Under the pieces are notes generated by a model, which ran no database searches, was not told the DNA's origin, and was given only the letters and a program-made list of their open reading frames with translations. Positions 4,613 through 24,813 of a DNA stretch of 33,585 nt are shown here, piece by piece. Source of the DNA: Guillardia theta CCMP2712 (taxonomy: Eukaryota; Protista; Cryptophyta); assembly GCF_000315625.1 (NCBI RefSeq), contig NW_005434598.1:177052-210636 (forward strand). Direction: 5' to 3'. Both the position numbers and the translations under genes were made by a program. Numbering within the stretch: position 1 is the first letter of the stretch; each line of letters opens with the position of its first letter.

Positions 4613-5417
4613 GGGCAGATGCATGTTAGAGAGGTCCTACCTTCCTCCCATCCCTGTCCTTCTCCCTTCTTCCTCTATTACTATTGCTTTCAGTCTGATT
4701 CTGTCTTCACCTCAGCTCGCAGCATTCTGCCGTTGATTTCACCGCACCCGGTCTATTCGCTGCAACACTCTTCCACCCCTTCTACGTCCTCACTCCTCCG
4801 ACCCCACTCCGGTTTCCAGAGCACTCTGCTCATCGTTTCATCACATTCGAATTCTCTTGCTTTCTTCCGGTTGCGCCTCCGCCTCCACCCGCTTCCTCCT
4901 TTCCTCCCTGTATTCCCACTCCCAACGTCCTCCTATCTATCATGCTGCTTCCCCTTCCTTGGCGTCGGCGCCATCCTTACCAACCTTCTTCCTCTCCTCC
5001 TCTCATCTCATCCATCATCATCATCTACCATCCTATCCTCTTCCTCCTCTTCCTCCTCTTCCTCCTCTTCCTCCCCTTCCCTCCATCGCACCTTCTTATT
5101 GCCAGCATCACGCGCGTCGCAAATCCTCGCAGATGTACCCCTCATCCCACCGCAGCCCCGCCTCACTCTGAACTGAGTGATCGGGCTTGTGATCGGGCCC
5201 GGGCCGCAGCCGGCCCGGAGCTCAAATTTGTGGACGCACACCTCTGACTATTTTTGTACATTCCCGGTGCACCGATAAATTCCTAGATGTATGTCTGAGA
5301 ATGTTCCAGATTTTGATCAATTTATCATCAAACTTTGATATTCTAGTTAAATATTTCGAAACATCATTGAAATAGTAGAATTTGGGACCCTTGCACTCTA
5401 TTTGTGGTGTACAAACC

Positions 5418-6306
5418 ATGTTTGCCCTCGTTCGCCGCTTCCATGCTCTTCGCGTCTCCCTGCTCCAGCTCGAGCTCGGTAACCTCCTCCCCCCTCTTGT
5501 CCTCCTTCCCCCTCTCCTCCTTCCCCCTCCCTCTCCTCGTCCTCCTGCCTCTCTTCATCCTCCTCGTCCTCGTCCTCCTCCCTCCTTCATCCTCCTCGTT
5601 TTCCTCGTCCTCGTCCTCCTCCCTCTCGTCCTCCTCGTCCTCGCCCTCGCCCTCCTCCTCCTACCCCTTCTACAACATTGTCTATCAATTTCCTCCTCCT
5701 CCATTTCCTGCCGCAGACCTCTCGTTCTGCCTTATACCCCCCCCTTCATCTCACCCCACTCCTGTTCTGCTTTGCCCTGCCTCGTCTTCTTCTTTCTCTG
5801 ATCCTGTTCCCGCTCGTCCCTTTCCTGTCTCGGCTCCACATGCTGCTTCCATTTTTCTGCTCAAACTGTGCGGGCGTTGAAAGCTTGTAGGACCCAACGG
5901 ATATCCTATCAGCCCGATCCACGATTGTGTCGACGAGGTCCCTCCAGAGGAATGGCTGTCTGCATACACCGATACCATCGATCAGGTTTGACCTCCGTGT
6001 CATGTAGTCGCGCATGCACGTTGAGTTGAATCTTGTATGCTCTGTTGGTCAGTTCGTTTCAGCCTTTCCATGTTTCTCAGTTTGTTTCGTCGACTGTTTT
6101 TCTCATTTGCTGTAGGCTGACGCCATGAACGCCAACGGTGTCACTGCGAACATCCCAGAGTGGGCGGACAGCACTCCTGCTGGAAACAATGCCATCCGAA
6201 TGTGCAAGAAAGGTGAGGACGGGAGAGTTTGCTGTGAATCATGCGGGAGGATCGGAGGACAGCGGAGTTTGATATGCAGCCGATGACAATGATGTCAGGT
6301 TACTAG
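5418..6306 (+). CDS. Small multi-exon hypothetical protein (about 85 aa)
   Basis: Phase-consistent splicing gives MFALVRRFHALRVSLLQLEL|GPNGYPISPIHDCVDEVPPEEWLSAYTDTIDQ|ADAMNANGVTANIPEWADSTPAGNNAIRMCKK|GY*. No family recognised. Confidence 0.5.
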
Positions 6307-6736
6307 AATGGGGAGCATATCTCATTGTTGGAAGATAGCATAACACGTCATGCTCTGTCTCTGCCCCATCTCACCTGTTGATTGTAGATCGAACATTTGC
6401 CGATCAGGTGCGGCACTGAGAGCTCGTACGTGCGGTGAAGTCGATCGTTATGAATGAATGCTGGACGATTGTTACTGCATTTGCCGCATCCTGTTTCTCC
6501 TCCTCCTCCTCCTCCTCTCTTCTGTTCAACTTCGCTTTTCATTTTCCTCTGTCCTGCACACTCCATCCTTCCCCTTCCCCTTCGTTTCTCCACTCATTCA
6601 TCTTAGGCTGGTCCGTTCCTCTTTCCTGGTTGCTCACCTCCCCTCCCCCTCTCCCTCTCCCTCCCTCTCCCCCTCTTTTCCTCTCCCTCCCTCCCCCTCT
6701 CCCTAGCATACTTTCCCCTTCCTGTCTCCTGCATGT

Positions 6737-7229
6737 NNNNNNNNNNNNNNNNNNNNNNNNNNNNNNNNNNNNNNNNNNNNNNNNNNNNNNNNNNNNNNNN
6801 NNNNNNNNNNNNNNNNNNNNNNNNNNNNNNNNNNNNNNNNNNNNNNNNNNNNNNNNNNNNNNNNNNNNNNNNNNNNNNNNNNNNNNNNNNNNNNNNNNNN
6901 NNNNNNNNNNNNNNNNNNNNNNNNNNNNNNNNNNNNNNNNNNNNNNNNNNNNNNNNNNNNNNNNNNNNNNNNNNNNNNNNNNNNNNNNNNNNNNNNNNNN
7001 NNNNNNNNNNNNNNNNNNNNNNNNNNNNNNNNNNNNNNNNNNNNNNNNNNNNNNNNNNNNNNNNNNNNNNNNNNNNNNNNNNNNNNNNNNNNNNNNNNNN
7101 NNNNNNNNNNNNNNNNNNNNNNNNNNNNNNNNNNNNNNNNNNNNNNNNNNNNNNNNNNNNNNNNNNNNNNNNNNNNNNNNNNNNNNNNNNNNNNNNNNNN
7201 NNNNNNNNNNNNNNNNNNNNNNNNNNNNN
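6737..7229. other. Assembly gap (N run); further 100-N gaps at 10480-10579, 12224-12323 and 14387-14486
   Basis: Runs of N, mostly flanked by polypurine/polypyrimidine low-complexity DNA. Confidence 1.
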
Positions 7230-7385
7230 CATCAAGTTCTCCACATGTTACATTCTTAGACTCTTGTAGAGAACCTGTGATGCTCAACGCCGTTACTGCT
7301 ATGCCCTCGTTCTATCCTCCTCTATTTTACTTGTTTAGTCAAAAAGAACGACAATTCTCTATGAGGTGGAGGATGTGAAAGTTCT

Positions 7386-7852: not shown

Positions 7853-9413
7853 ACATCGTCATCATTTCATCTTCATCCTCTCCATCTCTTTGAACATCTC
7901 CATTCCATCATGACAGTCTCCGTCATCATGGTTGTTGTTGCCATGTTGTCATATTTTCACGTTCATGTCTTCCAACTCCTCACTTGTAAAATTCAAAAAG
8001 ATGCCCATCAAAGACCGAGTCCATAACTTGCTTTCCTGTTCAGCAATTAGCGACATCTTCAACACTTTCAACGAGCAAACCGATCATCCTTCCGCCTGCA
8101 GTATGCGCAAAGTAGTAATTGTAGAAGTGAGTAAGGAAGACCTACGGGATGTAAACATGACAAACGTTTGCGAGAAAAATCTCACAGGAATGCTGAGAGT
8201 CGAGAGGTATTGCGCGTATTCCTTTGACTGCTCAACAAATCAGGTTCATTGCTGTTTTCTCTTTCCAATCAAAGTGTGAAGATTATCAATCGCAAGACAA
8301 AACTTTCTTTACATTACAATCTCCCTTCACAGCCTCCCTCTGCTCCTCCTACTCCTGCTCTTCTCCCTCCTGCTCCTACCCCTTTCTCCACCTCCACCTT
8401 CATATCCTCCTCCTCCTCCGTTCGTCCTCCTCCCTCTCTTCCTGTCACCATCGCGCTCTTGTTCACATCACAGGGACATCACTAAGAGCCCACCTGATCT
8501 GTTGCCTTGAGCGGTTTGATGTTGAAAGACTTCTCAATCCATTCGATGTCTTTCTCCAGACCCCTCACTCGCTCCAGCCCTGTACATCTGTCATCTACAT
8601 GCTCAACAGCTCGACTCCGTCCGACATCAGCTGTCTCACACCATCAACGTCTCATACGAACATCTATTCTACGTGTACACTGGTCGACCAACACACCTGT
8701 GTTTCTGAACTTCTCCAGTCCTGACCGCTGGACTTCTTTCTCAAACGCCTCGTACACCACCTTGCTGTAACTTCGTCGTCAGAGAACATACAGAACATAC
8801 AGTGCTCTCTGACTCCCAAAACCTCCTCACCTGTCAACAAGAAATTGAAGGTAGTCCTCCTTTGTTGTCTCCCACTGATCCACAACCGTGTTTGCAGACT
8901 GCAATCGTATTGTGAGATATCGAACAATGCACGGCAAGAGGACCAATCTCATGTTCAAAACACATCAACCCACGTACCACACAAGAAAATCTCAACAAGA
9001 CAACCAACATACGACATCTTCAACAAACAAAACACAACCGATACAACACTTCAACACGAAGACATGCAAAATCTTACAGCATCCTTCTGCTTTCCCTCCC
9101 TCGGGGCCTGAGAGAAAGTATGAAGGCTCATAGCCTTCTGCCTCATCTCTTGCGTGAAGGGAACAGACGCGACCTCGGCAGACGGCGTGCTCTTGGCACA
9201 CATCATGGGAGCTAGCGAGACAGTCAGCCCCATTCCTCCACATGCTCTCACCTTCTCACCTGCGTTTCTGAGTAGAAGCGATGTTCGCAGCGATGGCTTC
9301 AAGGCATGAGTGAGTTGCCATCGGCCCTCCGCACGTCCACCTACCTGCATGAACGCCGTTGTCGCGGTGATGGAGCATAGGGAGCAGAGCAGGGCAGGAA
9401 TCAAAGAGCGCAT
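7386..9413 (-). CDS. HO1: Plant-type (HY1/HO1-like) heme oxygenase with bipartite plastid leader; last exon uncertain
   Basis: Exons: FTQEMRQKAMSLHT..EGK, WETTKEDYLQFLVDS, KVVYEAFE..FRNT, GLERVRGLEKDIEW, FLTHFYNYYFAHTAGGRMIG, FEFYK, WDGDVKEILTKVK..GWTRE. N-terminus MRSLIPALLCSLCSITATTA-FMQ is a signal peptide with +1 Phe, followed by an S/R-rich transit peptide. Confidence 0.9.
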
Positions 9414-10937
9414 CTGCACCGGCCATAAGCATCATCAGCGCAAACTCAACGACATATCGAAGGCTTCTTCGCGCCGTCAAAAGTAAGTTGCAGAGAAGAG
9501 AAGTAAGTAAGTGGGTGGGAAAGATTCCTTTCAGAATCTTGTATCAATCTTACTCCCATTGCCTCATGCAGATTTTTTCATGATAAACATCTCTGGACCA
9601 CTACGTATATCTCCTATAATGCAACTCTGCAAGGATTCGCCATAGAACGCAGCTCCTTTCCCTCCTTCCTCTTTCTCTCATCAACAACAATGTCTTCGCT
9701 TGTCTCTCTTTTCCAATATCCTGCTCTCCTGCTCTCCCCCTCTTCCTCGTCCTCCCCGTCCTTCTCTTCACATCTCGTAAACGTATCGTCTTGCCATGTT
9801 CGCTTGCTGACTAAATAGCGGTTTCCCCTCTTTTCAACCCTTTTACATCTAAATTTGTACCAAGTATAACGTATATATTGTGTAATAAGGTATATATTGC
9901 TTGTTGCCCCCGACACATCAGCATCACCGGTATGTTTCACCCTTTAAAAGGGGGTACTTCTGGTGTAAGACATGGGGTGGCTGATTCCTCAGCAGAGGCA
10001 TAAAGAGGGGGTGGTGGCCTCTGAGGCAGGCTAGGTTCACTTGGGGTTGAGGGGGTAGTGTGAGTGAAAAACGGGGGTAGTTGAGGGATTTTGAGGTCCA
10101 ACAGTCGATGAGGGGGGTAATGAACTGGAAAGTACGGGGTAGGAGTAAGGGTGGGCCTAAGGACGGTCATGAAGGGGTAGAGGAACATGTGAAATAGGGG
10201 GTAGGTAACAGGGGTAGTATTTTTGTTTCAGTCAAGTAGTAGTGAAGAAAAGGCAGCAAGTCGTAATTAGACCATGGACATTGACTCAATCATGGGCAAA
10301 AAAGGGGCAGGGGTTAAATCGATGGGGGTAGGTCATTCAAATAATCACTCAAACCGGTGCTTTCGAAGGGATAAATGAGGGTAGGGGTACTTGTAGAGGG
10401 GGTCAGGGTGACATTTGTCGGAGAAGGGATTTTGTGCCTCCTGCTCCTGCTCCTAATTTGCGCCTCCTCCCCCCCCCCTNNNNNNNNNNNNNNNNNNNNN
10501 NNNNNNNNNNNNNNNNNNNNNNNNNNNNNNNNNNNNNNNNNNNNNNNNNNNNNNNNNNNNNNNNNNNNNNNNNNNNNNNCCTTCCGCCGCCGCCGCCGCT
10601 CTTGCTGCTGCATTGGCTCCTTCTCCTCCTCCTTCTCCTCCTCCTTCTCCTCCTCCTGCCAGTGCCGTTGGCCATGTTACTCCAGTCTTCAATGTTCGCT
10701 CCTGGCAACTCCCTTCTTTACCTCTGTGCATGAAATTATCCTACCTTACCACAATCTCTCTCTTCCCTGCAACGTCTACTTCTGTACCCTGTTCCCACCA
10801 ACCCACCATTGCTTGTTTCCTCTTGCGCTTGCAGTTCTCGAGCTCCTCTACTTCATTGGTACACGTCTCTAGTCTTGCCATGACTTGATCTCCTTCGCTT
10901 TATCCTCACTGATATCCTCATGTTTCGTCTCCTGGCA

Positions 10938-12105: not shown

Positions 12106-12360
12106 TCCTCTCCTCCTCCTCCTCCTTCAGTCGCCCTTCCCTTTCCCCCTACCCCTCCTCCCTCCTCCCTCCTCCCTCCTCCCTCCTCCCGCCTCCCTTC
12201 TTCTCTCTCTACTCGTACGTCCCNNNNNNNNNNNNNNNNNNNNNNNNNNNNNNNNNNNNNNNNNNNNNNNNNNNNNNNNNNNNNNNNNNNNNNNNNNNNN
12301 NNNNNNNNNNNNNNNNNNNNNNNGGAGGGAGGGAGGGAGGGAGGGAGAGGGAGAGAGGGT

Positions 12361-14273: not shown

Positions 14274-16196
14274 TCTCTCCTGCTCTTTCTCTTCGTCCTC
14301 GTCCTCGACCATCCTTGCCCCAGTCCTCTTCGTTCTCCTTGCTCATATCCTGTTCCTCAAATTCCTCCTCCTCCCCCTCCCTTCCTNNNNNNNNNNNNNN
14401 NNNNNNNNNNNNNNNNNNNNNNNNNNNNNNNNNNNNNNNNNNNNNNNNNNNNNNNNNNNNNNNNNNNNNNNNNNNNNNNNNNNNNNTCTTCCTCCTCCTC
14501 CTCCTCCTCCTCCTCCTCCTCCTCCTCCTCCTCCTCCTCCTCTGACCTGCCAGCATTCAGCATGATGCGACGTAATGCTCAAACAAAGAGGTGTCCCTAC
14601 AACCAATTACAACGCATCATGATAATCTCAGACAAATGCTTTCAAACCAAGTTCAAATCTCCCGCTCTGCGTTAGAAAAATAACACGAGGAGGCTAAAAA
14701 AGATCATATCAAAAGTGAGCAAAATCTAACAACGTTGGACCTTCATTGGATAATCCCTGTCAAGTTGTATTCTGCCATGATATAACCCTCTTGCGAAAGG
14801 AGATTCTGCCAAACTCGTGAGAATTTACTCACATCCACCCTCCCTGCGCTTTCCTCCTCTCTTCCTCTCCTCCTTCTCTCCCCTCTTTCTCTCCTCCTCT
14901 CCTCTCTTTCTCTCCTCGTTCTCTCCTCTCCTCCTCGTCCTCGCTCCTTGTGCTCTTTAATCTCCTTTGCATCTCACCTGGCGCTCCAAGAAGAACAAAA
15001 TGCCAATCAAGAATATCATCTTCCATGGGCCTGAGAAAAATATCATTGTTTCCATCATCATCACATCGTTATTGTCATCCTCGTGTCATCATAATATCCA
15101 GCAGCAGCACCTGCACTGGTACCTGGACCTGGACCTGGACCTGGACCTGCACTCCATTCTCCTCCTCCTCCTCCTCCTCCTCCTCCTCCCCACCTACTGC
15201 TCGTCCTGCTCGTCCTACTCGTCATCTCTCCCTTCCAGTCCTGCTCCTTGCTCCTTGCTCCTCCTCTACATCGAGATCACAATGATCGCTTGTCTCACTT
15301 TGCACGGAAGAAATCAGGCGGGTCTTCTTGTAGCGCTGCAAGCTCGCTATGCACTCTTTTGATCGCAAGCGGACTCGGAGGACCTTGACTGCAACCAGGA
15401 CACGTCAGAGAAGACAAGAACACATCAAACAACATGTTCAGAGTCAACACCACGGGATAGAATGTCATAGAGTGTATATGAAGTACACAGTACGAGTTTG
15501 ATCGAAAGCGAAACATGAAGATAACAACATGCCAAGTTCACTTGATGAGTTTGAGTTCAAATGATGTTACAGCTCCTCTTGTCGCGTCGCACATCTCACC
15601 TGAACCCGTCATTCAGCTGGTCCAGACCTCCTCTAAGTCTCAGCGAGGAAGGTCTGTTCCTGTCCACTGATATCCTTCCACCGTATGCTAGCTCGACGCC
15701 CGAGATGCTGAGAGCAGCGAGAGGGAGTGAGGCAGAAGAGGAGAGGAGAGGAGAGGAGAGGAAAAAGAAGAAAGGGAGAAAGATGAGATGTGATGAGATG
15801 AGAGGAGAGGAGAGGAGAAAGAAGAAAGGGAGAAAGATGAGATGTGATGAGATGAGAGGAGAGGAACAAGAAGAAAGGGGAAAAGATGAGATGAGATGAG
15901 ATGAGAGGAGAGGAACAACCAGAAAAGGGAAAAGAGGAGAGGAGAGGGAAAAGAAGAAAGGGGAAAAGATGAGATGAGATGAGATGAGATGAGATGAGAT
16001 GAGAGGAGAGGAGAAGAACAACCAGAAAGGGGAAAAGAGGAGAGGAGAGGGAAAAGAAGAAAAGGGAAAAGAGGAGAGTAGTTCTCGTCAGAAAGATATT
16101 CGAATCTTGTCAATGAAAAATAAACCTCAAGGACCATATTTCCCCTGTACAACAGCAAAACATGACGACAAGGCTGAAGATCTTGACGGATTTCAT
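12361..16196 (-). CDS. Ubc6/UBE2J-family ubiquitin-conjugating enzyme with N-terminal leader and C-terminal hydrophobic plus coiled-coil extension; 3' end approximate
   Basis: Phase-consistent exons: MKSVKIFSLVVMFCCCTGEIWSL|SISG..SSLRLRGGLDQLNDGF|SQGPPSPLAIKRVHSELAALQEDPPDFFRA|KPMEDDILDWHFVLLGAP|ESPFARGLYHGRIQLDRDYPMK|PPRVIFLTQSGRFEL|GTPLCLSITSHHAECWQ (catalytic Cys)|gap|GAIGGIESDEKDREFFA...FFLWLA|NMIGGV...LKQRNLKLERDL|RRLEALAQ|YEEKANEAEQ|ELGMTNDHIQELL. Confidence 0.85.
12860..12936. repeat. (GAGT)n microsatellite, intronic
   Basis: GAGT run interrupted by GATT units. Confidence 0.9.
15721..16080. repeat. Composite purine-rich tandem repeat (GAGAG/GAGAT/GAAGAAAGGG units) in intron 1 of the E2 gene
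   Basis: Roughly 50-bp unit (...gaagaaagggagaaagatgagatgtgatgagatgagagg...) repeated with degeneration. Confidence 0.85.
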
Positions 16197-16757
16197 CTCT
16201 TTCTTGTTGTCTTCTCTCCAAGATTCACATTATCTCCATGTTCATCTTCACATCGTCGTCATAAACTATCCCTTGCCATCGCCCGTTTCCCACTGGTCTT
16301 CGAACACTGAAGTTCCTCCCCAATGTTCACACCACCACATGCACATTTCTTTATCTCTCTCCCTCCCCCCCCTCCTCTCTCTCTCTCTTCCTCACTCGGC
16401 CACTGTCACGCTCCCTCCCCTCCCTCCCCTCCCTCTTTCCCTTCTCCTCCCCTGCGGCCCCCACCTGCATTTTTCCCTGCCCGCTCCGGGAATTTGTTTT
16501 TCCGCTTTTTGGTAGGAACAGGAACACGGGGGAAGGGAAGAGAGGGGAGAGGAGCAAGAGGGAGGGAGAGAGGGAGAGCAAGGGGTGCATGTCAGGGGAA
16601 TGGAGGAGGCGATGGGAGAAGGGGACGAGAGTGGAGAGGGGAAGGGGTTGGGGACGGGAGAGGGGGAGAGGGGGGGGAAGGGGAGGGGAGGGGACGGGAA
16701 GGAGCAGAGATCTTGAGTCTTTATCAGGTTCAAACGATTATTCATGATGCATGCCGT

Positions 16758-18686
16758 TCAGTCAGCGACATAGCACGTAGAGGCACTTCGAACAATCTCC
16801 TCCGGTTCGCATGCACACATGCATATCCTGTAGATGAGGTCGAGGAGCGGGAAGCGACCAACAACCTGTTTGTCTCGTAGCATCTGCACACGGAAGGACA
16901 GCTCAACGCCGCTGCCCTTGTACAACCCTCCTCCTCTACCTTGTGCACATGCTCGATGGTCGACACTCCTTGTAGCTTCTGCCCTCCGAGCATGCTTGCT
17001 TCGAGCTGCTTCCAGTCTCGCGGTCCTCTCGCAAACTGTTCCGCGCACCTGGAAGGTGTCGTGAATGATTGGGATCTGCGCACGACACAATGATTACTTC
17101 CTGTTTCTCCCCCCGAAGCATGTCGTGATGAGGTCAGCAACGCCGCAAGATTCCAAGATAGTGTCTTTCTGACAGGTGTACCAAGGTTTTCAGAGATGTG
17201 GTAGAGAAGAAAGGAAGATGCTATTACCATCATCTCAGGGAAGAAAGTCTCCCCAAATCTCAACATCTCATGCATCCCAATGCGCATGATTGCCGCTTTT
17301 GTGTTTGTTCCATACCTGTTGTCACATGATTATGATGATGTTGACATGCACATCGGCGCACCCAAGTCCATCTACAAAACCTGCTCCCAGTGCTATGACA
17401 TTCTTCAGCGTTCCAAAAATCTCAACGCCCACAGGGTCAGGAATGAGCCTTAGCTGTAAATGTTTCAGAAACCAATACCAATACGCTGCTTGCAACAGTG
17501 ACATCGGAAGGACCTGAAAAGTCGGTTGCTCAAACAGCGTCTTGATGAGTTCCGCATTCCCCTTCGACCTGTATCCAATGGTTGCCTCACAGAAGTCTCC
17601 TGCATGTAACTTTAAGGCTCGTAAAGAACAATCTTACTCTTTGATCGCACCACGTGCAACCTCATCAGCAACGTTTGCTCCCATCAAGACAGAGATGTCA
17701 CATCCTTCCAGCCCATCTGAGATCTGACAACACGTTGAGTTCTTCACCCCTTTGTCTTCTCCGTACCTGCTGCGAGATTCGAACTAAATTGCCATCCTTG
17801 TCTGTTGGACGGTCAGTACAACACCGAGAAAAAACGGTGGAAGGAGAGGAAAATATTTGCGGCGAGTTGCGGAAAGAAAGGATACACGTGCATTACCTGT
17901 CGCCATTCCTTTGATCAACGATACTGCAATCGCGTTGGAGCTCCTTGCTTGTTGGATGGTGGGAAGAAGTCTGAACAATACGTCAGCAGGTCTAATCTTG
18001 ATCTGCAAGTTGTGCTGGTGACTTTGGAAGAAACTGGTGAGGGAGCGCGAAGACAAGGATCTGTGCATCAACATCAAATTTGCAAGCAGGTGTCGAGATC
18101 CATTTGACTGAGAACCCACAGTTGCTCCCGACGCTGCTTGTGCGAGATCTGGGACCGCGATCACATTGGATGGCAACTCGACACCTATTAGTAAACGATC
18201 ACGACACCACGGATTGACATTGCAAGAGCAAGACCTGGGAGGTATTTCACATTTTCATGCCGCGTATTTATGATCTCAGTAAGTTTCTGTCCGTCAACAA
18301 TCTCCTCGTACCTTTCTCGGCAAAATCATGCAACGAACCCCCGCCCTCAAAACTTACACCCACATCTTGACCGACCTGTCGAACCTGTCTCCAAGCCTCT
18401 CTGTGTTCTGCCCGATGATTCTTGCAACTGTACTGCCCCAGTTCCCAGACCCAACTACACACACACGCTCCACATCTGGTCTTTCGCCCACTCCACCCCT
18501 CAATCTTTCCCATCCATAAATCTGCCGCAACGTTCCCACATGCTCACGGATCAACCCACCAGCCAGCACTACCCGCCCTTGGACTGCAGCAACCTGAGAT
18601 AGGGGAAGATGGCCGGCATGAGAGCACACTTGAAGTAGCGACATGGCAAGCAGAGGTATTTGCAACCTTTGATGAGGAAGACGCAT
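16758..18686 (-). CDS. GPD1: NAD-dependent glycerol-3-phosphate dehydrogenase (eukaryotic GPD1 type) with N-terminal leader; alternative start 18881, possible extra last exon ending 16266
   Basis: [106 protein letters not shown]. Confidence 0.95.
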
Positions 18687-18885
18687 GGAGGATTGCCGAA
18701 AGAGGCGGCAGGCTGATCTGGATGCAACAGACGATGGAGACGATGCCGTTAGAGACGAGGATGATGATGATGATGAAGATGATGCCAATGATGATGATGA
18801 TGATGACGACGACGACGACGATGAGGGGCAGGATTGCGCGCCTGGCTGTCCCACAGCCATTTTGCTGGCCGTCTCAGGCATGATG

Positions 18886-18919
18886 CTTTACTCAAAGTTA
18901 AGTTAAAAATCAGTACGAG
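18886..18919 (-). promoter_or_regulatory. 34-bp element CTCGTACTGATTTTTAACTTAACTTTGAGTAAAG upstream of GPD1
   Basis: Reverse complement is identical over 34 nt to 1383-1416, in the same orientation relative to the downstream gene. Confidence 0.55.
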
Positions 18920-21018
18920 TTCATACATATAAAAGGGAGCCTGGCCCGCCTCCGATTTGGGGCTGCCAGACCCCGGGCCCGACTCCGGACCCGGCCGAGC
19001 GCTCCCGGGGATGGACCAGCGAACTAAAAAAACATCTCTCTCGGAATAGGCTTAACCAACATTACCACAAGTTTTACTCATCATCAGAGGACCGGTGGCA
19101 TTATCGCCACCCCCGGTTAGTAGTGACAGCTCGACTACCCCTCTATCCCCTTAAAGTAGAGCTCATACGTTACCGTTGGGGTAGGGGCTGTAGCACCAAC
19201 AAGTACAACAGGTGTATCCAATAAAACCCCTATCTCAGTACCCCACCTCTCTAGAGGTGTTTGCGGGAATCAGCAGGGTATTTACCTGGGTCTTTTTTGA
19301 CTACCCTACCCTTGAGTGATCTACAGGATCGCCGGGTGGTCAGGGTCACCATGCTGAGGTACGCAATCACCGGGTTCAATATTGACGGAGTCCTGAACGT
19401 CCTGTTTACTACACGCTCTGAAGAACACTAGGGGTACTGATGTCCAGAAAAGTGTGGGTAGGGGTGGTAATTGCTATCCCGCCCTCTTCGCAATAGTCCT
19501 CGGAATCGGCGAGCAACTCAGGCAGTTATGTCCGTTACATCTGTTTACTACACATCTTCACCTTTGAACATGTCCGTTGGTTGACCGTTTTAGATCGTTA
19601 CAAACCGTTCTTTCCTCTTCAACGGTTGCGAACGCTTCGCCCCCGTTTCGAAAGGAGGTTTTTTCGAGATATGGATAGAGATATACGACCTCCCTTCCTA
19701 CCCCACCCCCTTCCTCATCTGTACCCTACCAGAAGAGGTCTGGTCGCCTTGCAATCCGGCCTGCACCCCACCCTTGGGCTGAAAGGGGCTACAATTATCC
19801 AGTCAATCACTAACTTCAAAATGTGATTCAATTCCCAGTTATGTCAAACAAAGTTTGGAATTTGATACAAATATTTAATGTGTCAATTTCTGGTTGTCCA
19901 CCCAAATTTCCTGCACTTCCCGGACCCAACCCATCCCAGACCACCACCCCTCATTTGGACTTCCCACTGCCATGTACCCCTACGATCTTACCCTTAAGTC
20001 CTCTGACTCGCCGCAGCATGGACTGCTGTGCAATGGGGTATACCTTGAGAGTTTTATATTTCTCTTGAAGTAGAAAATGGTTATCATGATATCCTCTCCC
20101 TCCTACCATGATCTCCAAGATCAACTACCCCACCCCACAGCATCGTTTGTCTGGATCCTTCGGAGCTCTTTGCTGACTTTATGGACTTGGACTGGTACCC
20201 CACCCCTCAGATTGAGCGACGTTGGTATAACCCCACCCCCTGCCTCCATAATTTTCATGATTTAACACCCTACCTATCTTTTCCCATCCGTTTCCAGTAT
20301 AAACAACCAGTACTCAGGATCGCCGCCTACTAGTCACGATACCGGATTTCTGCCCAAGGACCACCCCTACCCCCATACGTTGGCACTCCGCATACTCCAC
20401 CCACCCCGCGGTCCCCTAATTGTAACTAAGCATAAGCCTAGCATGCTGCGAGGCTGCGACTGGTCGTTGGCCATGCTCTCCCCCCTTCCTGTAACTTGAT
20501 TGCGTTCCATCATGGTCGATCACTTGTTCCGATACTTCTCTTCTCCACTTCTATACCTTCCAGCATGTCAGATTCAGCTCGATCTCCAAGTTTTCATCAT
20601 ACGTAGTCACGAGAACTTGTAGTGATAGACTGAGCAAGTCACGAGCTCTGGAGCATGTTTCTGCCGTCATATCCATTGCTCGTGCTTGTACTTTTGCAAA
20701 CTGATTACCAAGTAATCGATTGTTCACAACCTCCCAATGCATGAACTCTGCTCCTTCGAGCTATTGTTTCTTGTTTCGTGTTCTTCGTAGACCATGACCT
20801 CATACCTTGTTCCAACCATGCTTCTCTGACCTGATTGCAGGCCCAGCCTTTGGACCACCAGCGATAAACACCTTTGTTGGGGTGCTTCAATTTGGTTGGG
20901 AACTATCATGCTCTATTGATTCAGGCACGCAAAACAAAAGGGTCAATTACTTATTGTTGGACTGCTGCCATACAACCTGGTGTTGTGCTATAAGGATTAC
21001 TTGTATTTAACAGCTGAT

Positions 21019-24000
21019 ATGTCGTCCATACTGTTTTTCCCAAGCACACATCTCTGTGCCTTTACATGCTTTCTCGTCATTTTATTGACCAGCTTCAGTT
21101 GTCCTTGTCGAGCCGACGTTACACCCAGGTCGGACATTTACGTTGGAGTGATGCTGGCAGAGGCCTTCGAGATCGATCGACACGTCAAGAATTTCATCGA
21201 GGCCCTTGTTCTTGATATCAATAATGACGACAAGTTGCTTCCCAATCATACCATTCGGCTGATGTTTGCCGACCTGACAGTTCTTCGAATGATCAACCCG
21301 CATCCAAGTGGAAGGAGGAGAGAACACTCTCAGAAAGTTGTTGAGATGCAGAAACAATCTATCCTGCGGTCTTTCTCGATTCCGAAGCAGCGAAGCTTGT
21401 CAAAGGAGCAAGGCTGCGCGGCGCGTCAGTCTGAGTTCCCTATTGCGATCCTTGGGCCCCGATCTAGCGCGGACATATCGGTGTATGACCAGGTGCAACT
21501 TGCAAACGAATCGATCTCGATCAGCTTCAGTGCTACTGCTTCCTCCTTGTCGACAAGTCCTTTCATCGCCCGTGTTGTTCCTTCCGATCACTTCCAAGGA
21601 AAGTGCCTGGTGGACGCGATGTTGAGTTTGAATGTGCAGAGTGTCGATATCATCCAGTGTAGAGACAGCTACTGCCAGGGGTTGGCCAAGGATTTCCTGC
21701 ATCATGCTCATCGCAAGATCAGGGCAATAGTGCATGAAAATTCCTTCAGAGACTATGAGGCAACAAAAGCTGCTCTGTCCCTCATCTCGAAACGCTGCGA
21801 GGGTTCGCGCGTGATCTTGCTCGCTATGCATGCGCAGCATGCTCAGGATATCTTGGATGCGGCAAGGGAGCTCAAGATAGTCGATGACTTCTTCTGGTTC
21901 GGCAGTGAGTCTGTCAGCACCCTTCCCATCGACGTCCTCCCTCGAGGATACATCGGCGTCCAGCTCAAGACGAGGATGAGGCGTCCCGAGCTGCTGGAGA
22001 AGGCGGAGAGGACATGGAAGTCCTTGGGAGGGGATACGTATCCTGGAAGGGAAGCTCTTCTTTCAGACGCAGTCTTCAGCTATGCCCATGATGCCGTGAT
22101 GTCTCTGTCGTTCGCCTTGGACGCGATGGCTCGGTCGAGCTCGCCCTTGGATGCTCAGAGTCTCAAGCGGGAGCTGCGCAACGTTGCCTTCGAGGGTATT
22201 TCACAGGCCATCTCCTTCGACTCGAACTTGGACCTGCGATCTGTCAAGTGAGCAACTGCTTTCTGTGAAGCTTCTTGTCCTCAAAGATGCATCTTCGTGA
22301 CTTGTATCTTGTGTTGCAAATCCGTTCTTGGCTCTTTCCTTTTTTCTTGCTCTTCTCTCTTCTCCTCCTTTCCTCCGCTCCGCTTCTCTTCCTCCATCTC
22401 GTCTACCCACATCATCCTGTTCCATTTTGCACTTGTTTGCTGGTCTTGCATCATTGACTCGGTCCAGCATCATTGACTTGGTGATTCAGGTATGACATAA
22501 TCGCAAAGCTTGATTTCGAAGGCATCCTTCAAATCGCCGAATGGGGAGAGAACAACCAGGATCCTTTGTTCATCAACAACTCTCAGATCTTGGAGAGCTT
22601 CTCCATCTTCTATGATCGGATCGTCAGCTCGAAGTCATACTCAACATGTCCTGTGCTGAACATCCGCAACATGGTTGCCTTGGTCCTGATCGCAGCAGGA
22701 GTGACCTTGTACTTGATCCGATCGCTGGTCATCTACAATGATGGTGCAGACTCTTACTGGAAGATCAAAGAGAGCGAACTGGAGTTTGATGACCCTGTCA
22801 AGATTCTAGGACAAGGGACATTTGGTGAGGTAATTCGAGCAGAGTACAGAGGGACGACCGTGGCGGTGAAAGGAGCTCTTCCCAAGAAGCTCAAAGACGA
22901 CGATTCTTCCCAGCACAGTGGACAGTCAGCATCATCCTCCTCCTCCGCCTGTGCCTCCAACTGCCCTCTCCCTCGCTTGCTGAGGAGAGACTCATCAATA
23001 TGGGAGAGAATCTCGTCCAGCTTGTTCCTCCACGTCTCGTCCTCGTCGCCCCTGGAGCCAGATCCGATCTCCTCCTCTCGACTGCGAGCTCAGTTCCTGC
23101 AGGAGATGAAAGTTCTTTCCAAGCTGCGCCATCCCTGCATCACGACGATCATGGGCGCTGTCATCGAGGACGGGAAGGAGCCGCGGCTGGTCACGGAGCT
23201 CATGAACTTCGGCTCCCTCAACGACTTTCTACACAACGATACTCTCCTCATCGAGCCAGAGATCATCCTCAACATTCTCATCGACGTCTCTCGAGGTGTT
23301 ACGTTCCTCCACTCCTCCCGCCCTCCCATTGTCCACGGAGACCTCAGGTCGCACAACGTGCTCGTGGACCACAACTTTCACGCCAAGGTCTCAGACTTTG
23401 GTCTCTCGCAGAAGCAGAAGCTCGGTTTCTGCTCCCCCCAGTGGCTCTCCCCCGAAGTGCTCCAGGGTCAGAAGAGGAGCACAGCCTCAGATGCGTACGC
23501 TTTCGGCATCCTGCTGTGCGAGGCGTACAGCAGGAGAGAGCCGTACGAGGGAGAGGACGTCACTGCTATCCTCCAGCAGGTGGCTGACACGAGCTTGCCC
23601 GTTCCGAAGCGCCCTCCTCATCCTGACGGGATGCCCAAGGAGGTCAAGGCGATCATGGAGGCATGCTGGGACAACTCGCCCGCTCTCCGTCCCCCCTTCT
23701 CCTCCATCTGCTCGCAGCTCAAGGCGCTTGACCTTAAGGACGAGTTTCTTAGTCCTATCCTTCGCTCTCGCCAGCGGGAGAAGTCCCTGAGGGAGGGAAT
23801 GGACCGCACCAACGACCTGCTCTACGACGTGCTTCCCCGGCACATCGCAGACGCTCTCAAGGAAGGCAAGAAGGTCGAGCCCGAGCACAGGGAGATCGTC
23901 ACCATCTTCTTCTCCGATATCGTCAACTTCACTCTCCTCAGCGCTTCCCTGCCTCCTGCCAAAGTCTCCGACATGCTCGACTCGCTCTACTCTCAGCTGG

Positions 24001-24813
24001 ATGCCCTAGCGAAGCAGCACGGCGTCTTCAAGCTCGAGACCATCGGCGACGCCTACATGGCCGTGACCAACCTGGTGGAGAAGCAGGAGGATGAGCACGC
24101 AGTAAGGATGGCCGCCTTTGCCCTCGCAGCCATAGAAGCAGCGGCCTCTATCCCCTTGGACCGAGAGCGTCCGGAGGAAGGAAGCATCCAGCTTCGAGTT
24201 GGAATTCACTCAGGGCCAGTAGTGGCGAGTGTGGTAGGGCGACAGCGACCCAAGTACACGCTGTTTGGGGATACGGTCAACACAGCATCTAGGATGGAGT
24301 CGAACTCCTTTCCTGGTAGGATACAGTGCTCTCAGGTGAGCAAAACTGCTCTTTCCTCTATACCCTCTCCCCTTCCCCTACTTCGCTTTCCTCATTCTCC
24401 TCCCTCACCGCCTGTCGTAGTAGCGCCCTTCCCATTCCTTCCTGCGTCATCGCCGCGTTCTACTCCTTACCCTCCTTTCCTTCTTCGCTACACTCCTTCC
24501 TCTCCTCTTCCTCCACCTGCCTCTTCCTCTCCCCTCTCTCCTCTTTAATCTTCTCACTCTGACTTTTCTTCATCAGCGAACTGCTAGTTTGATCTCCGAG
24601 CAAATGAAACTCAACGAAGACTTCATGGGCTCCGTCCACCTTACTTCAAGGGGAGAGATCCCAGTCAAGGGGAAGGGCATGATGAAAACCTTCTGGGTCA
24701 CTTCAGAGAAGTTCTGCTGCTCCTTTAAGGATCGGCCTCGCTCCTGCTCCTCCGAGAGCATGCAACCTCTCTCTCTCTCCCGCGCTCAGGACGAAGTGCC
24801 GGTTTCTTCCTAA
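21019..24813 (+). CDS. Receptor-type guanylyl cyclase-like protein: signal peptide, ANF-receptor/type-1 periplasmic-binding domain, TM, TKL-like kinase, class III cyclase (3 exons)
   Basis: Exon 1 (21019 to about 22247): IAILGPRSS, SFSATASSLS..FIARVVPSD. Exon 2 (about 22490-24335): TM MVALVLIAAGVTLYLI, kinase GQGTFG/VAVK/HGDLRSHN/DFG/WLSPE, cyclase VTIFFSDIVNFT, KLETIGDAYM, RVGIHSG, LFGDTVNTASRMES. Exon 3: RGEIPVKGKGMMKTFW. Confidence 0.93.

Follow-up and report, generated by a model that had tools for sequence, protein, structure and literature searches.

Two adjacent genes with a ubiquitin-tail leader ending

The window analysed here is a 33,585-nucleotide stretch of the Guillardia theta CCMP2712 genome (contig NW_005434598.1, positions 177,052 to 210,636), and all coordinates below are numbered within it. 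Two adjacent genes on its minus strand, encoding an E2 ubiquitin-conjugating enzyme and a glycerol-3-phosphate dehydrogenase (GPD1), were examined because the original prediction had claimed that the leaders of both close with the tail of ubiquitin. This ending is confirmed: LRLRGG lies at 15643-15626 in the E2 and RLRGG at 18506-18492 in GPD1, the predicted coordinates were right, and the spliced transcript contigs agree. Gene structures were taken from such contigs of two runs (X1 and X9), in which both motif exons are part of the mature mRNA and in frame, with the motif downstream of the start codon and ahead of the catalytic domain. Expression of the two genes is read from these assembled contigs, in which transcript starts are not visible; raw RNA reads (X18) gave zero coverage over both at the sampled depth. 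The features are as follows:

9051..9419, minus strand: contrast leader (the heme oxygenase of the original prediction), lacking RGG, in which a signal peptide is present and Phe comes immediately behind TATTA (sequence, hydrophobicity rule)
near 14556-14606, minus strand: E2 catalytic-Cys exon GTPLCLSITSHHAECWQ, in frame, predicted junctions (translation)
14978-15029, 14741-14805 and 14648-14693, minus strand: further E2 exons and introns (transcript joints, translations)
15298..15388, minus strand: E2 exon 3, in which the UBC domain begins, SPLAIKRVHSELAALQEDPP... (transcript contigs, UBE2D2 match)
15600..15707, minus strand: E2 exon 2, encoding the linker (transit-peptide-like), the motif LRLRGG and seven residues beyond it (transcript contigs, translation)
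15626..15643, minus strand: E2 LRLRGG codons CTG AGA CTT AGA GGA GGT (sequence)
15708..16125, minus strand: E2 intron 1, GT..AG, non-coding (transcript joint, sequence)
16126..16265, minus strand: E2 exon 1 (transcript contig X1 joins 16126 to 15707; spliced translation)
16126-16196, minus strand: part of exon 1 encoding the E2 signal peptide MKSVKIFSLVVMFCCCTGEIWSL (spliced translation)
16196-16194, minus strand: E2 start ATG (spliced translation)
16245-16225, minus strand: upstream open reading frame of six codons in the 5'UTR, E2 exon 1 (sequence)
16710..18308, minus strand: GPD1 exons 2-13 (twelve GT..AG joints)
18355..18816, minus strand: GPD1 exon 1, leader and first 45 residues of the NAD-binding domain (transcript contigs; PF01210 at residues 75-109)
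18492..18506, minus strand: GPD1 RLRGG codons AGA TTG AGG GGT GGA (sequence; kept in five relatives)
18615..18686, minus strand: GPD1 hydrophobic, signal-peptide-like segment of 24 residues (passes the hydrophobicity rule)
18686-18684, minus strand: first GPD1 ATG within the transcript contigs (transcript contigs)
20980..22251, plus strand: contrast protein of secretory type with a signal peptide and an ANF-receptor ligand-binding domain, without the motif (hydrophobicity rule, Pfam)

The spliced E2 reads MKSVKIFSLVVMFCCCTGEIWS, a 29-residue linker, LRLRGG, 14 residues and then SPLAIKRVHSEL, the first UBC helix. Its N-terminal signal peptide, MKSVKIFSLVVMFCCCTG, was assigned in exon 1 by a heuristic rule, not by SignalP; at the crude +1 position stands a non-aromatic residue, E or L, and LRLRGG begins 52 residues after the start Met. 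The predicted order (hydrophobic N-terminus, linker, LRLRGG, UBC domain) stands, with the correction that the signal peptide has an upstream exon of its own (ATG at 16196), outside the range given for the finding. The intervening intron 1 (418 bases) consists almost entirely of a purine-rich tandem repeat with a 49/103-base unit. A hydrophobic, repeat-derived frame upstream of the motif (15708-16021) was considered as coding sequence and rejected, since it is without an ATG and is spliced out; no ATG was found in the motif-holding frame across 15708-16125.

As to its type, exon 3 aligned with residues 1-28 of UBE2D2 chains (the first helix, E = 0.014), the only PDB match of exon 5 was a weak one to UBE2J2 (E = 1.4), and the enzyme may be an E2 of the Ubc6/UBE2J type. 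The E2 proposed for the cryptophyte SELMA system (s_Ubc) is of Ubc7 type, in the Ubc7/Atg7 family, and its candidate falls in the Atg7 group (PMC12412216); because the only subtype signal of the window E2 points to Ubc6/UBE2J instead, there are no grounds for naming it "the" SELMA E2. A PF00179 profile search of its own genome did not detect it, because its exons are small, and no relative was found in metagenome contigs searched with the 73-residue E2 open frame.

GPD1 comprises 13 exons (16710 to about 18816) with a complete spliced frame in the transcript contigs. Exon 1 encodes, in order, the hydrophobic leader, a linker, WERLRGG, the eight residues VGERPDVE and the NAD-binding motif; RLRGG begins 60 residues after the Met at 18686, and the crude +1 residue is G, non-aromatic. 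PF01210 is found in exon 1, the nearest full-length relative (the Hanusia-type P0144) has both PF01210 and PF07479, and the product is an NAD-dependent glycerol-3-phosphate dehydrogenase. The start codon is uncertain: the frame is open upstream as far as ATGs at 18860 and 18881, the transcript contigs end in a masked repeat near 18816, and a long Ser-rich extension ahead of the hydrophobic segment may leave the signal peptide recessed.

The motif recurs in five relatives of GPD1 as WERLRGG (P0001, a near relative), RRIRGG (Hanusia phi), CRLRGG (Rhodomonas), LRLRGG (P0013) and QRMRGG (P0091). In GPD1 and these five, R-[L/I/M]-R-G-G stands 7-10 residues ahead of VC[VLI][VI]GSGNWG, at the end of leaders that are otherwise unalignable; the relatives P0008 (Rhodomonas) and P0091 open with clear signal peptides. 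In GPD1, judged from these orthologues, the motif has been kept across cryptophyte genera while the remaining leader diverged. A homologue search with the Hanusia GPD1 protein yielded one near-identical addition, all other hits being leaderless GPDs.

Neither leader contains a ubiquitin fold, in agreement with the prediction. PF00240 gave no match in either at E up to 10, the window was not among 50 genomic ubiquitin-family matches, and BLASTP against G. theta ubiquitin produced no alignment for the GPD1 leader and aligned only the LRLRGG heptad of the E2 leader. A by-eye likeness of the GPD1 leader to the C-terminal half of ubiquitin, as a hidden remnant of it, was rejected on the lack of both a BLASTP alignment and a Pfam match. 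The leader at 9051-9419, offered originally as a contrast, does combine a signal peptide and a +1 Phe with the absence of RGG, but a Pfam search of this first exon gave no match and so did not confirm it as a heme oxygenase.

A genome-wide class of signal-peptide leaders

Across the G. theta genome, a degenerate LRLRGG DNA pattern gave 353 matches, against 255 for a reversed control, and true L-R-L-R-G-G codons were present in 73 of the first 100 pattern matches (expectation 32%). A Met and a signal-peptide-like segment preceded the motif in the same open frame at 35 of 60 sampled LRLRGG sites, compared with 3.5% of background positions, which corresponds to a 17-fold enrichment (binomial p about 2e-35) as measured by crude rules for signal-peptide (hydrophobicity) and +1 assignment, not by SignalP. 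The distance from the Met/signal-peptide start to LRLRGG ranged from 29 to 82 residues among the 35 leaders (median 46), basic residues exceeded acidic ones in the linkers, and the codons used for LRLRGG varied widely among sites. A stromal Phe occupied the crude +1 position in none of the 35. Throughout the genome the motif is thus characteristic of signal-peptide leaders of the non-Phe kind, and the site and pattern counts bear out the claim that it marks a large class of bipartite leaders. Extrapolated from the sample, the genome would contain at least about 150 LRLRGG leaders encoded in a single exon, plus variants and split-exon cases; the evidence on this class spans cryptophytes only.

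The cargoes include EF-1alpha, ribosomal protein L22e, HAT1, histone H2A, a methyltransferase and a RETICULATA-like protein, and they are cytosol- or nucleus-type housekeeping proteins. Where the native N-terminus can be recognised, the motif adjoins it: in EF-1alpha, GKEK, with which the native protein begins, comes directly after GG. Pro was found directly after GG in none of the 35 leaders, a sample too small for significance, and its absence fits the expectation for ubiquitin-type cleavage.

The periplastid compartment as probable destination

A transit-peptide-like sequence with no aromatic residue at +1 points to the periplastid compartment or the nucleomorph as its destination (PMC5443833). 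The leader class carries the features of such targeting, as originally proposed, with no +1 Phe in the 35 leaders, cytosol- or nucleus-type cargo and a leader-bearing H2A. Among the H2A loci, only L098 has a leader (a signal peptide and LRLRGG), the three canonical H2A genes being leaderless, and we take L098 to be the leader-bearing H2A that was immunolocalised to the nucleomorph (PMC5443833). The best reading of a motif-ended leader is that of a periplastid-compartment leader, the end of which would be a processing site.

Proposed leader processing and its alternatives

In the proposed mechanism, the E2 and GPD1 pre-proteins would be destined for the periplastid compartment, which is what remains of the red-algal cytoplasm and contains the nucleomorph. 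The signal peptide of the bipartite leader would bring the chain into the ER lumen, and a short linker rich in Ser, Ala, Arg, Gly and Pro, without a +1 Phe, would convey it across the periplastid membrane. The leader ends in R-[L/I/M]-R-G-G, the ubiquitin tail, a few residues ahead of the mature domain, and there a resident deubiquitinase-type cysteine protease would recognise L-R-G-G like the end of ubiquitin and cut after the second Gly. This cut would free the mature enzyme and strip off its leader, along with whatever ubiquitin SELMA-type import had added to it.

We hold it rather probable that both pre-proteins go to the periplastid compartment and that their R-[L/I/M]-R-G-G ends are cut by a deubiquitinase-type protease. 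A ubiquitin-type protease probably cuts the leader at RLRGG inside the remnant endosymbiont cytoplasm; here we infer the protease class, the link to ubiquitin removal and, from the position of the motif, cleavage after GG. Viral papain-like proteases, e.g. coronavirus PLpro, double as deubiquitinases and cut their polyprotein at LXGG without a ubiquitin fold, which makes the proposed chemistry feasible. Of twenty USP loci scanned in G. theta, one (L085) itself starts with a signal peptide and LSLRGG, which makes it probable that the compartment receives one deubiquitinase or more. Cryptophytes are reported to lack ptDUP, the import deubiquitinase of the diatom type, and must have another enzyme (PMC12412216).

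Less probably, the motif is functional and conserved without being cut by a ubiquitin-type protease. It may then serve in sorting or retention, with a ubiquitin-tail-binding import component or a factor retaining proteins in the periplastid compartment as its reader. In another version a different peptidase may cut there: with a cut between the two glycines, Arg would stand at -2, as an M16-type processing peptidase would also have it. Conservation and position show constraint, not an enzyme. Ordinary deubiquitinases require a ubiquitin fold for efficient cutting, and leaders without one count against deubiquitinase cleavage. A comparable RGG has been tested once in published work, in Toxoplasma PUBL, and the outcome also opposes cleavage after GG: lying directly before the mature domain, this RGG is neither needed nor processed (PMC5487736). 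Against these points, the motif exactly copies P4-P1 of ubiquitin (L-R-G-G), and often P6-P1; ubiquitin-type and viral LXGG proteases have a narrow active-site channel that demands Gly-Gly; and the motif lies at the mature-domain boundary while its spacing from the signal peptide varies, like that of a cleavage site.

Two further explanations question whether the motif has a function at all. An evolutionary leftover, in which exon shuffling copied the leaders out of a precursor gene for ubiquitin or polyubiquitin, the tail having no present function, would account for the identity of LRLRGG with the end of ubiquitin and for the RGG ahead of the ubiquitin-like domain of PUBL. It is nevertheless very improbable, as the leaders otherwise resemble neither each other nor ubiquitin, the GPD1 relatives keep the motif in diverged surroundings, and the codons differ widely between sites. 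A chance match within Arg/Leu/Gly-rich leader sequence finds some support in the shorter RLRGG DNA pattern, which is not over-represented (2240 matches versus 2653 in the control), but is refuted by the enrichment behind signal-peptide-like starts (17-fold), the excess of true codons (73% versus 32%) and the conservation of the motif across genera in GPD1, and we give it almost no credence.

Extending the favoured reading of deubiquitinase-type cleavage, cryptophytes may mature the proteins of their remnant cytoplasm by means of a ubiquitin-tail mimic, a resident deubiquitinase-fold protease reading L-R-G-G in the absence of a ubiquitin fold and excising the leader and any attached ubiquitin in one cut; this we advance tentatively, with somewhat more doubt than belief. 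If true, leader excision by a deubiquitinase fold would constitute a new class of organelle presequence peptidase and take the place that the absence of ptDUP leaves vacant. How periplastid-staying proteins are distinguished from stromal ones, and how leaders are removed, are questions common to all algae with red complex plastids. An invariant, short and easily mutated motif would allow the proteome of the periplastid compartment and nucleomorph to be predicted by a sequence rule, along with the exact mature N-terminus of each protein, and LRGG-ended peptide substrates or activity-based probes would provide a handle for finding the protease. As cargoes, GPD1 would imply glycerol-3-phosphate or redox metabolism in the periplastid compartment, and the E2 a second, probably Ubc6-like, E2 alongside the Ubc7-type SELMA candidate.

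Ubiquitin fusion precursors (polyubiquitin and ubiquitin-ribosomal protein, cut by deubiquitinases after RGG) likewise have LRLRGG directly before the released protein and, as in our sample, no Pro after GG; the leaders here differ in lacking a ubiquitin fold and in spanning only about 29-41 residues after the signal peptide. Viral LXGG sites share a ubiquitin-tail tetrapeptide that is cut, without a ubiquitin fold, by a deubiquitinase-fold enzyme, but they belong to a viral polyprotein, not an organelle presequence, and no homologous enzyme was identified here. For ptDUP, the periplastid deubiquitinase of diatom SELMA, the proposed substrates are likewise pre-proteins imported into this compartment. 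It is reported absent from cryptophytes (PMC12412216) and is thought to strip ubiquitin, not leaders. Toxoplasma PUBL, a plastid ubiquitin-like protein that belongs to the apicoplast import machinery and to the periplastid space of a red complex plastid, has an RGG directly before its mature domain that its authors flagged as a potential deubiquitinase site; it is, however, a single protein, not a class, and mutation of the site had no effect, with no processing seen (PMC5487736). In the literature searched, this uncleaved RGG was the nearest case to a ubiquitin-tail leader ending, of which we found no description, and within the same literature a fixed motif of this kind at the leader end is absent from the published definition of periplastid bipartite signals. 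With those signals, as known from complex red plastids, the leaders share the signal peptide, the basic Ser/Ala-rich linker, the lack of a +1 Phe and the cytosol- or nucleus-type cargo, and the nucleomorph H2A (PMC5443833), which we equate with L098, is itself a member of the class.

The ubiquitin-tail motif and its leaders

The ubiquitin-tail motif (L)RLRGG closes the import leaders of a ubiquitin-conjugating enzyme (E2) and an NAD-dependent glycerol-3-phosphate dehydrogenase (GPD1), both encoded on the minus strand of the window:

15643-15626, minus strand: LRLRGG of the E2 leader
18506-18492, minus strand: RLRGG of the GPD1 leader

Five relatives with leaders emerged from an exhaustive profile search that took GPD1 exon 1 as its reference. 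These leaders read WERLRGG in the close relative P0001, RRIRGG in Hanusia phi, CRLRGG in Rhodomonas, and LRLRGG and QRMRGG in the two others; the nearest named relatives are the cryptophytes Hanusia phi and Rhodomonas sp. CCMP768. In each of these five proteins the motif lies 7-10 residues ahead of VC[VLI][VI]GSGNWG, while the remainder of the leader is unalignable, P0001 excepted, and the motif is absent from GPDs that have no leader, such as those of animals and fungi. Such conservation is what would be expected of a site under constraint in a presequence that otherwise drifts freely.

The original prediction held that neither leader contains a ubiquitin fold, and our searches agree. A Pfam search of both leaders returned no ubiquitin domain, even at E = 10, and the window is not among the 50 ubiquitin-family matches in the genome. 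BLASTP against the genome's own ubiquitin aligned only seven residues of the E2 leader (LRLRGG plus one) and gave no alignment for that of GPD1. With 29 (E2) and about 41 (GPD1) residues after the signal peptide, the available room is too small for the 76-residue fold.

Across the genome (87.1 Mb in 669 contigs, with the window on contig 76), a degenerate DNA pattern for RLRGG was not enriched (2240 matches versus 2653 for the reversed control), and the corresponding pattern for LRLRGG was (353 versus 255). Among the first 100 LRLRGG matches, 73 carried true Leu/Arg codons at all four degenerate positions, against a random expectation of about 32%. Taken in contig order, the first 60 of the true-codon sites were then scored for a leader, defined as a Met and an uncharged hydrophobic stretch upstream in the same open frame. 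Such a signal-peptide-like start was found at 35/60 sites, 29-82 residues upstream (median 46), compared with a background of 3.5% of 80,470 positions within those loci (binomial p ~2e-35), which upholds the earlier proposal that the motif marks a class of leaders; none of the 60 sites was a ubiquitin gene. The resulting 58% is a lower bound, since the rule misses signal peptides located on another exon, as in the E2. Scaled from this sample, the genome would hold roughly 150 single-exon LRLRGG leaders, with xRLRGG and LRGG variants in addition.

Gene models of the E2 and GPD1

Gene structures were derived from spliced transcript contigs of sequencing runs X1 and X9; contigs of run X14 represent unspliced DNA. 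Once translated, the spliced contigs reproduced the predicted motif coordinates and spacings in both genes and carried both motif exons in frame, so that the cDNA check for untranslated exons did not refute the prediction. The E2 transcript contig comprises 16245-16126, 15707-15600, 15388-15298, 15029-14978, 14805-14741 and 14693 downward, with all junctions GT..AG on the gene strand. Its spliced frame reads from the ATG at 16196 through MKSVKIFSLVVMFCCCTGEIWS and a 29-residue linker to LRLRGG; SPLAIKRVHSELAALQEDPP, reached 14 residues past the motif, aligns with helix 1 of E2 enzymes of solved structure (E = 0.014). The two leader exons are separated as follows, and no ATG occurs in the motif's frame across this repeat:

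E2 exon 1 to exon 2, minus strand, 418 bases: purine-rich tandem repeat, an intron

The E2 5'UTR (16225-16245, minus strand) holds a 6-codon upstream ORF, MNMEIM plus stop, within the transcript contig, ending 29 bases 5' of the main ATG. Runs of N (assembly gaps) lie in low-complexity tracts at 14380-14490, 6730-7240, 10480-10580 and 12240-12340. One such run falls in the E2 intron adjoining the catalytic-Cys exon, and the model downstream of 14600 is therefore putative. In a subtype comparison, only UBE2J2 matched, and only weakly (E = 1.4); the catalytic-Cys exon is presumably J-type-like. Since this weak resemblance differs from the Ubc7 type of the cryptophyte E2 candidate (PMC12412216) for SELMA, the ERAD-derived import machinery, the E2 of the window is more aptly called a further putative periplastid E2 than the SELMA E2.

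The transcript contigs resolve GPD1 into 13 exons with 12 joints. Exon 1 encodes, in order, a 24-residue leader segment, a 36-residue linker, RLRGG, VGERPDVE and an 11-residue mature-domain stretch; residues 75-109 match PF01210. As a whole, the gene specifies a complete NAD-dependent glycerol-3-phosphate dehydrogenase. Its frame stays open upstream via a Ser-rich stretch (18687-18881, minus strand) that holds two further ATGs, at 18860 and 18881. Given also that the transcript contigs stop inside a masked repeat near 18816, the signal peptide may be recessed. The frame is likewise open in P0001, and the Hanusia protein has a Ser-rich extension of about 65 residues and no Met beside its hydrophobic segment. 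This suggests that the signal peptide is recessed or that translation can begin at more than one site, with dual targeting of GPD1 as a possibility.

Just upstream of GPD1, a 34-base AT-rich element (18886-18919) has contig depths that sum to thousands in DNA-type and RNA-type runs alike and is adjoined by many different flanks, and some raw RNA reads run from it into GAC and poly(A). These features suggest the core of a transcribed repeat with dispersed copies; the original prediction places a second copy at about 1308. Within a GPD1 intron, one X14 DNA contig (depth 3.4) is short by one base at 17109, probably an error or an allele.

Leader type, cargoes and probable destination

By a crude +1 rule, none of the 35 motif leaders has Phe at +1 after the signal peptide; Ser, Leu, Ala, Arg, Gly and Pro abound in their linkers, where basic residues outnumber acidic ones. 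In cryptophytes, delivery to the stroma requires an aromatic +1, and its lack is a mark of periplastid or nucleomorph proteins (PMC5443833). The in-window contrast proposed earlier also holds, as the leader at 9051-9419 has a signal peptide and Phe after TATTA and lacks the motif. The motif is likewise absent from an ANF-receptor protein (20980-22251), though a signal peptide is present. The region 20980-24548 (plus strand) encodes this ANF-receptor ligand-binding domain with its signal peptide (PF01094, E = 1e-30); in the ORF that comes next, a membrane segment and domains resembling a kinase and a nucleotide cyclase were recognised by eye. Together they may form a single receptor-cyclase gene, the first domain being assigned by Pfam and the rest by eye.

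Domains found after the motif include EF-1alpha, HAT1, ribosomal protein L22e, a methyltransferase and a RETICULATA-like protein; these cargoes are of cytosolic or nuclear housekeeping types. Two loci with such cargoes are the following:

L025:532-699 and upstream (contig 3, ~1065284), minus strand: EF-1alpha copy with signal peptide and LRLRGG leader
L098:430-1460 (contig 4, ~101179-102210), plus strand: divergent H2A with LRLRGG leader

In the EF-1alpha copy, GG abuts GKEK, the native N-terminus, making it a clean case for mapping any cut. An antibody against the sole nucleus-encoded H2A with a bipartite leader located that protein in the nucleomorph (PMC5443833). The three canonical H2A genes of the genome lack a leader, and the sole divergent H2A locus (L098, identical to sampled site L027) encodes a signal peptide, linker and LRLRGG, with the histone-fold exon 300 bases downstream. 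As the only leader-bearing H2A locus in the genome, it is probably the source of the immunolocalised protein.

Proposed processing at the motif and candidate enzymes

Within the full-text literature, subscription-only papers excluded, we found no LRGG motif for Guillardia and no description of the motif among cryptophyte periplastid targeting motifs; for periplastid and RGG, only the paper on PUBL, a Toxoplasma plastid ubiquitin-like protein, was retrieved (PMC5487736). The conservation of the motif among GPD1 relatives speaks, at the sequence level, for a processing site at which the leader would be cut, as does its place at the mature boundary, which varies in distance from the signal peptide. 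Given its identity with ubiquitin P4-P1 and the demand for Gly-Gly, we propose that a protease whose active-site channel is of deubiquitinase type would cut the leader at this motif. Viral LXGG proteases offer a precedent, as enzymes of this kind that can cut a tail motif in the absence of the ubiquitin fold. A role as a sorting signal, or as the site of a different peptidase, stays a serious rival, because the comparable site of PUBL, the sole experimental test of such a site, is dispensable and unprocessed (PMC5487736); a cut between the two glycines would place Arg at -2, which suits an M16 enzyme.

For the proposed deubiquitinase-type cleavage, one candidate enzyme itself carries a leader:

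L085:4572-5885 (contig 13, ~4753-6066), plus strand: leader-bearing USP-family gene, with the USP domain from 6182

At its start this gene, probably Ubp6/USP14-like, encodes a signal peptide, a linker and LSLRGG. Next comes an open frame of 382 residues that gives a weak ubiquitin-like match, and the USP domain begins 116 bases beyond it; the product is a candidate periplastid deubiquitinase. The diatom periplastid import deubiquitinase, ptDUP, is reported to be missing from cryptophytes, where another enzyme must substitute for it (PMC12412216). A further candidate for the motif is the UfSP/ZUFSP-type peptidase with no assigned role whose gene is reported from each of the four cryptophyte nucleomorphs sequenced (PMC6559170).
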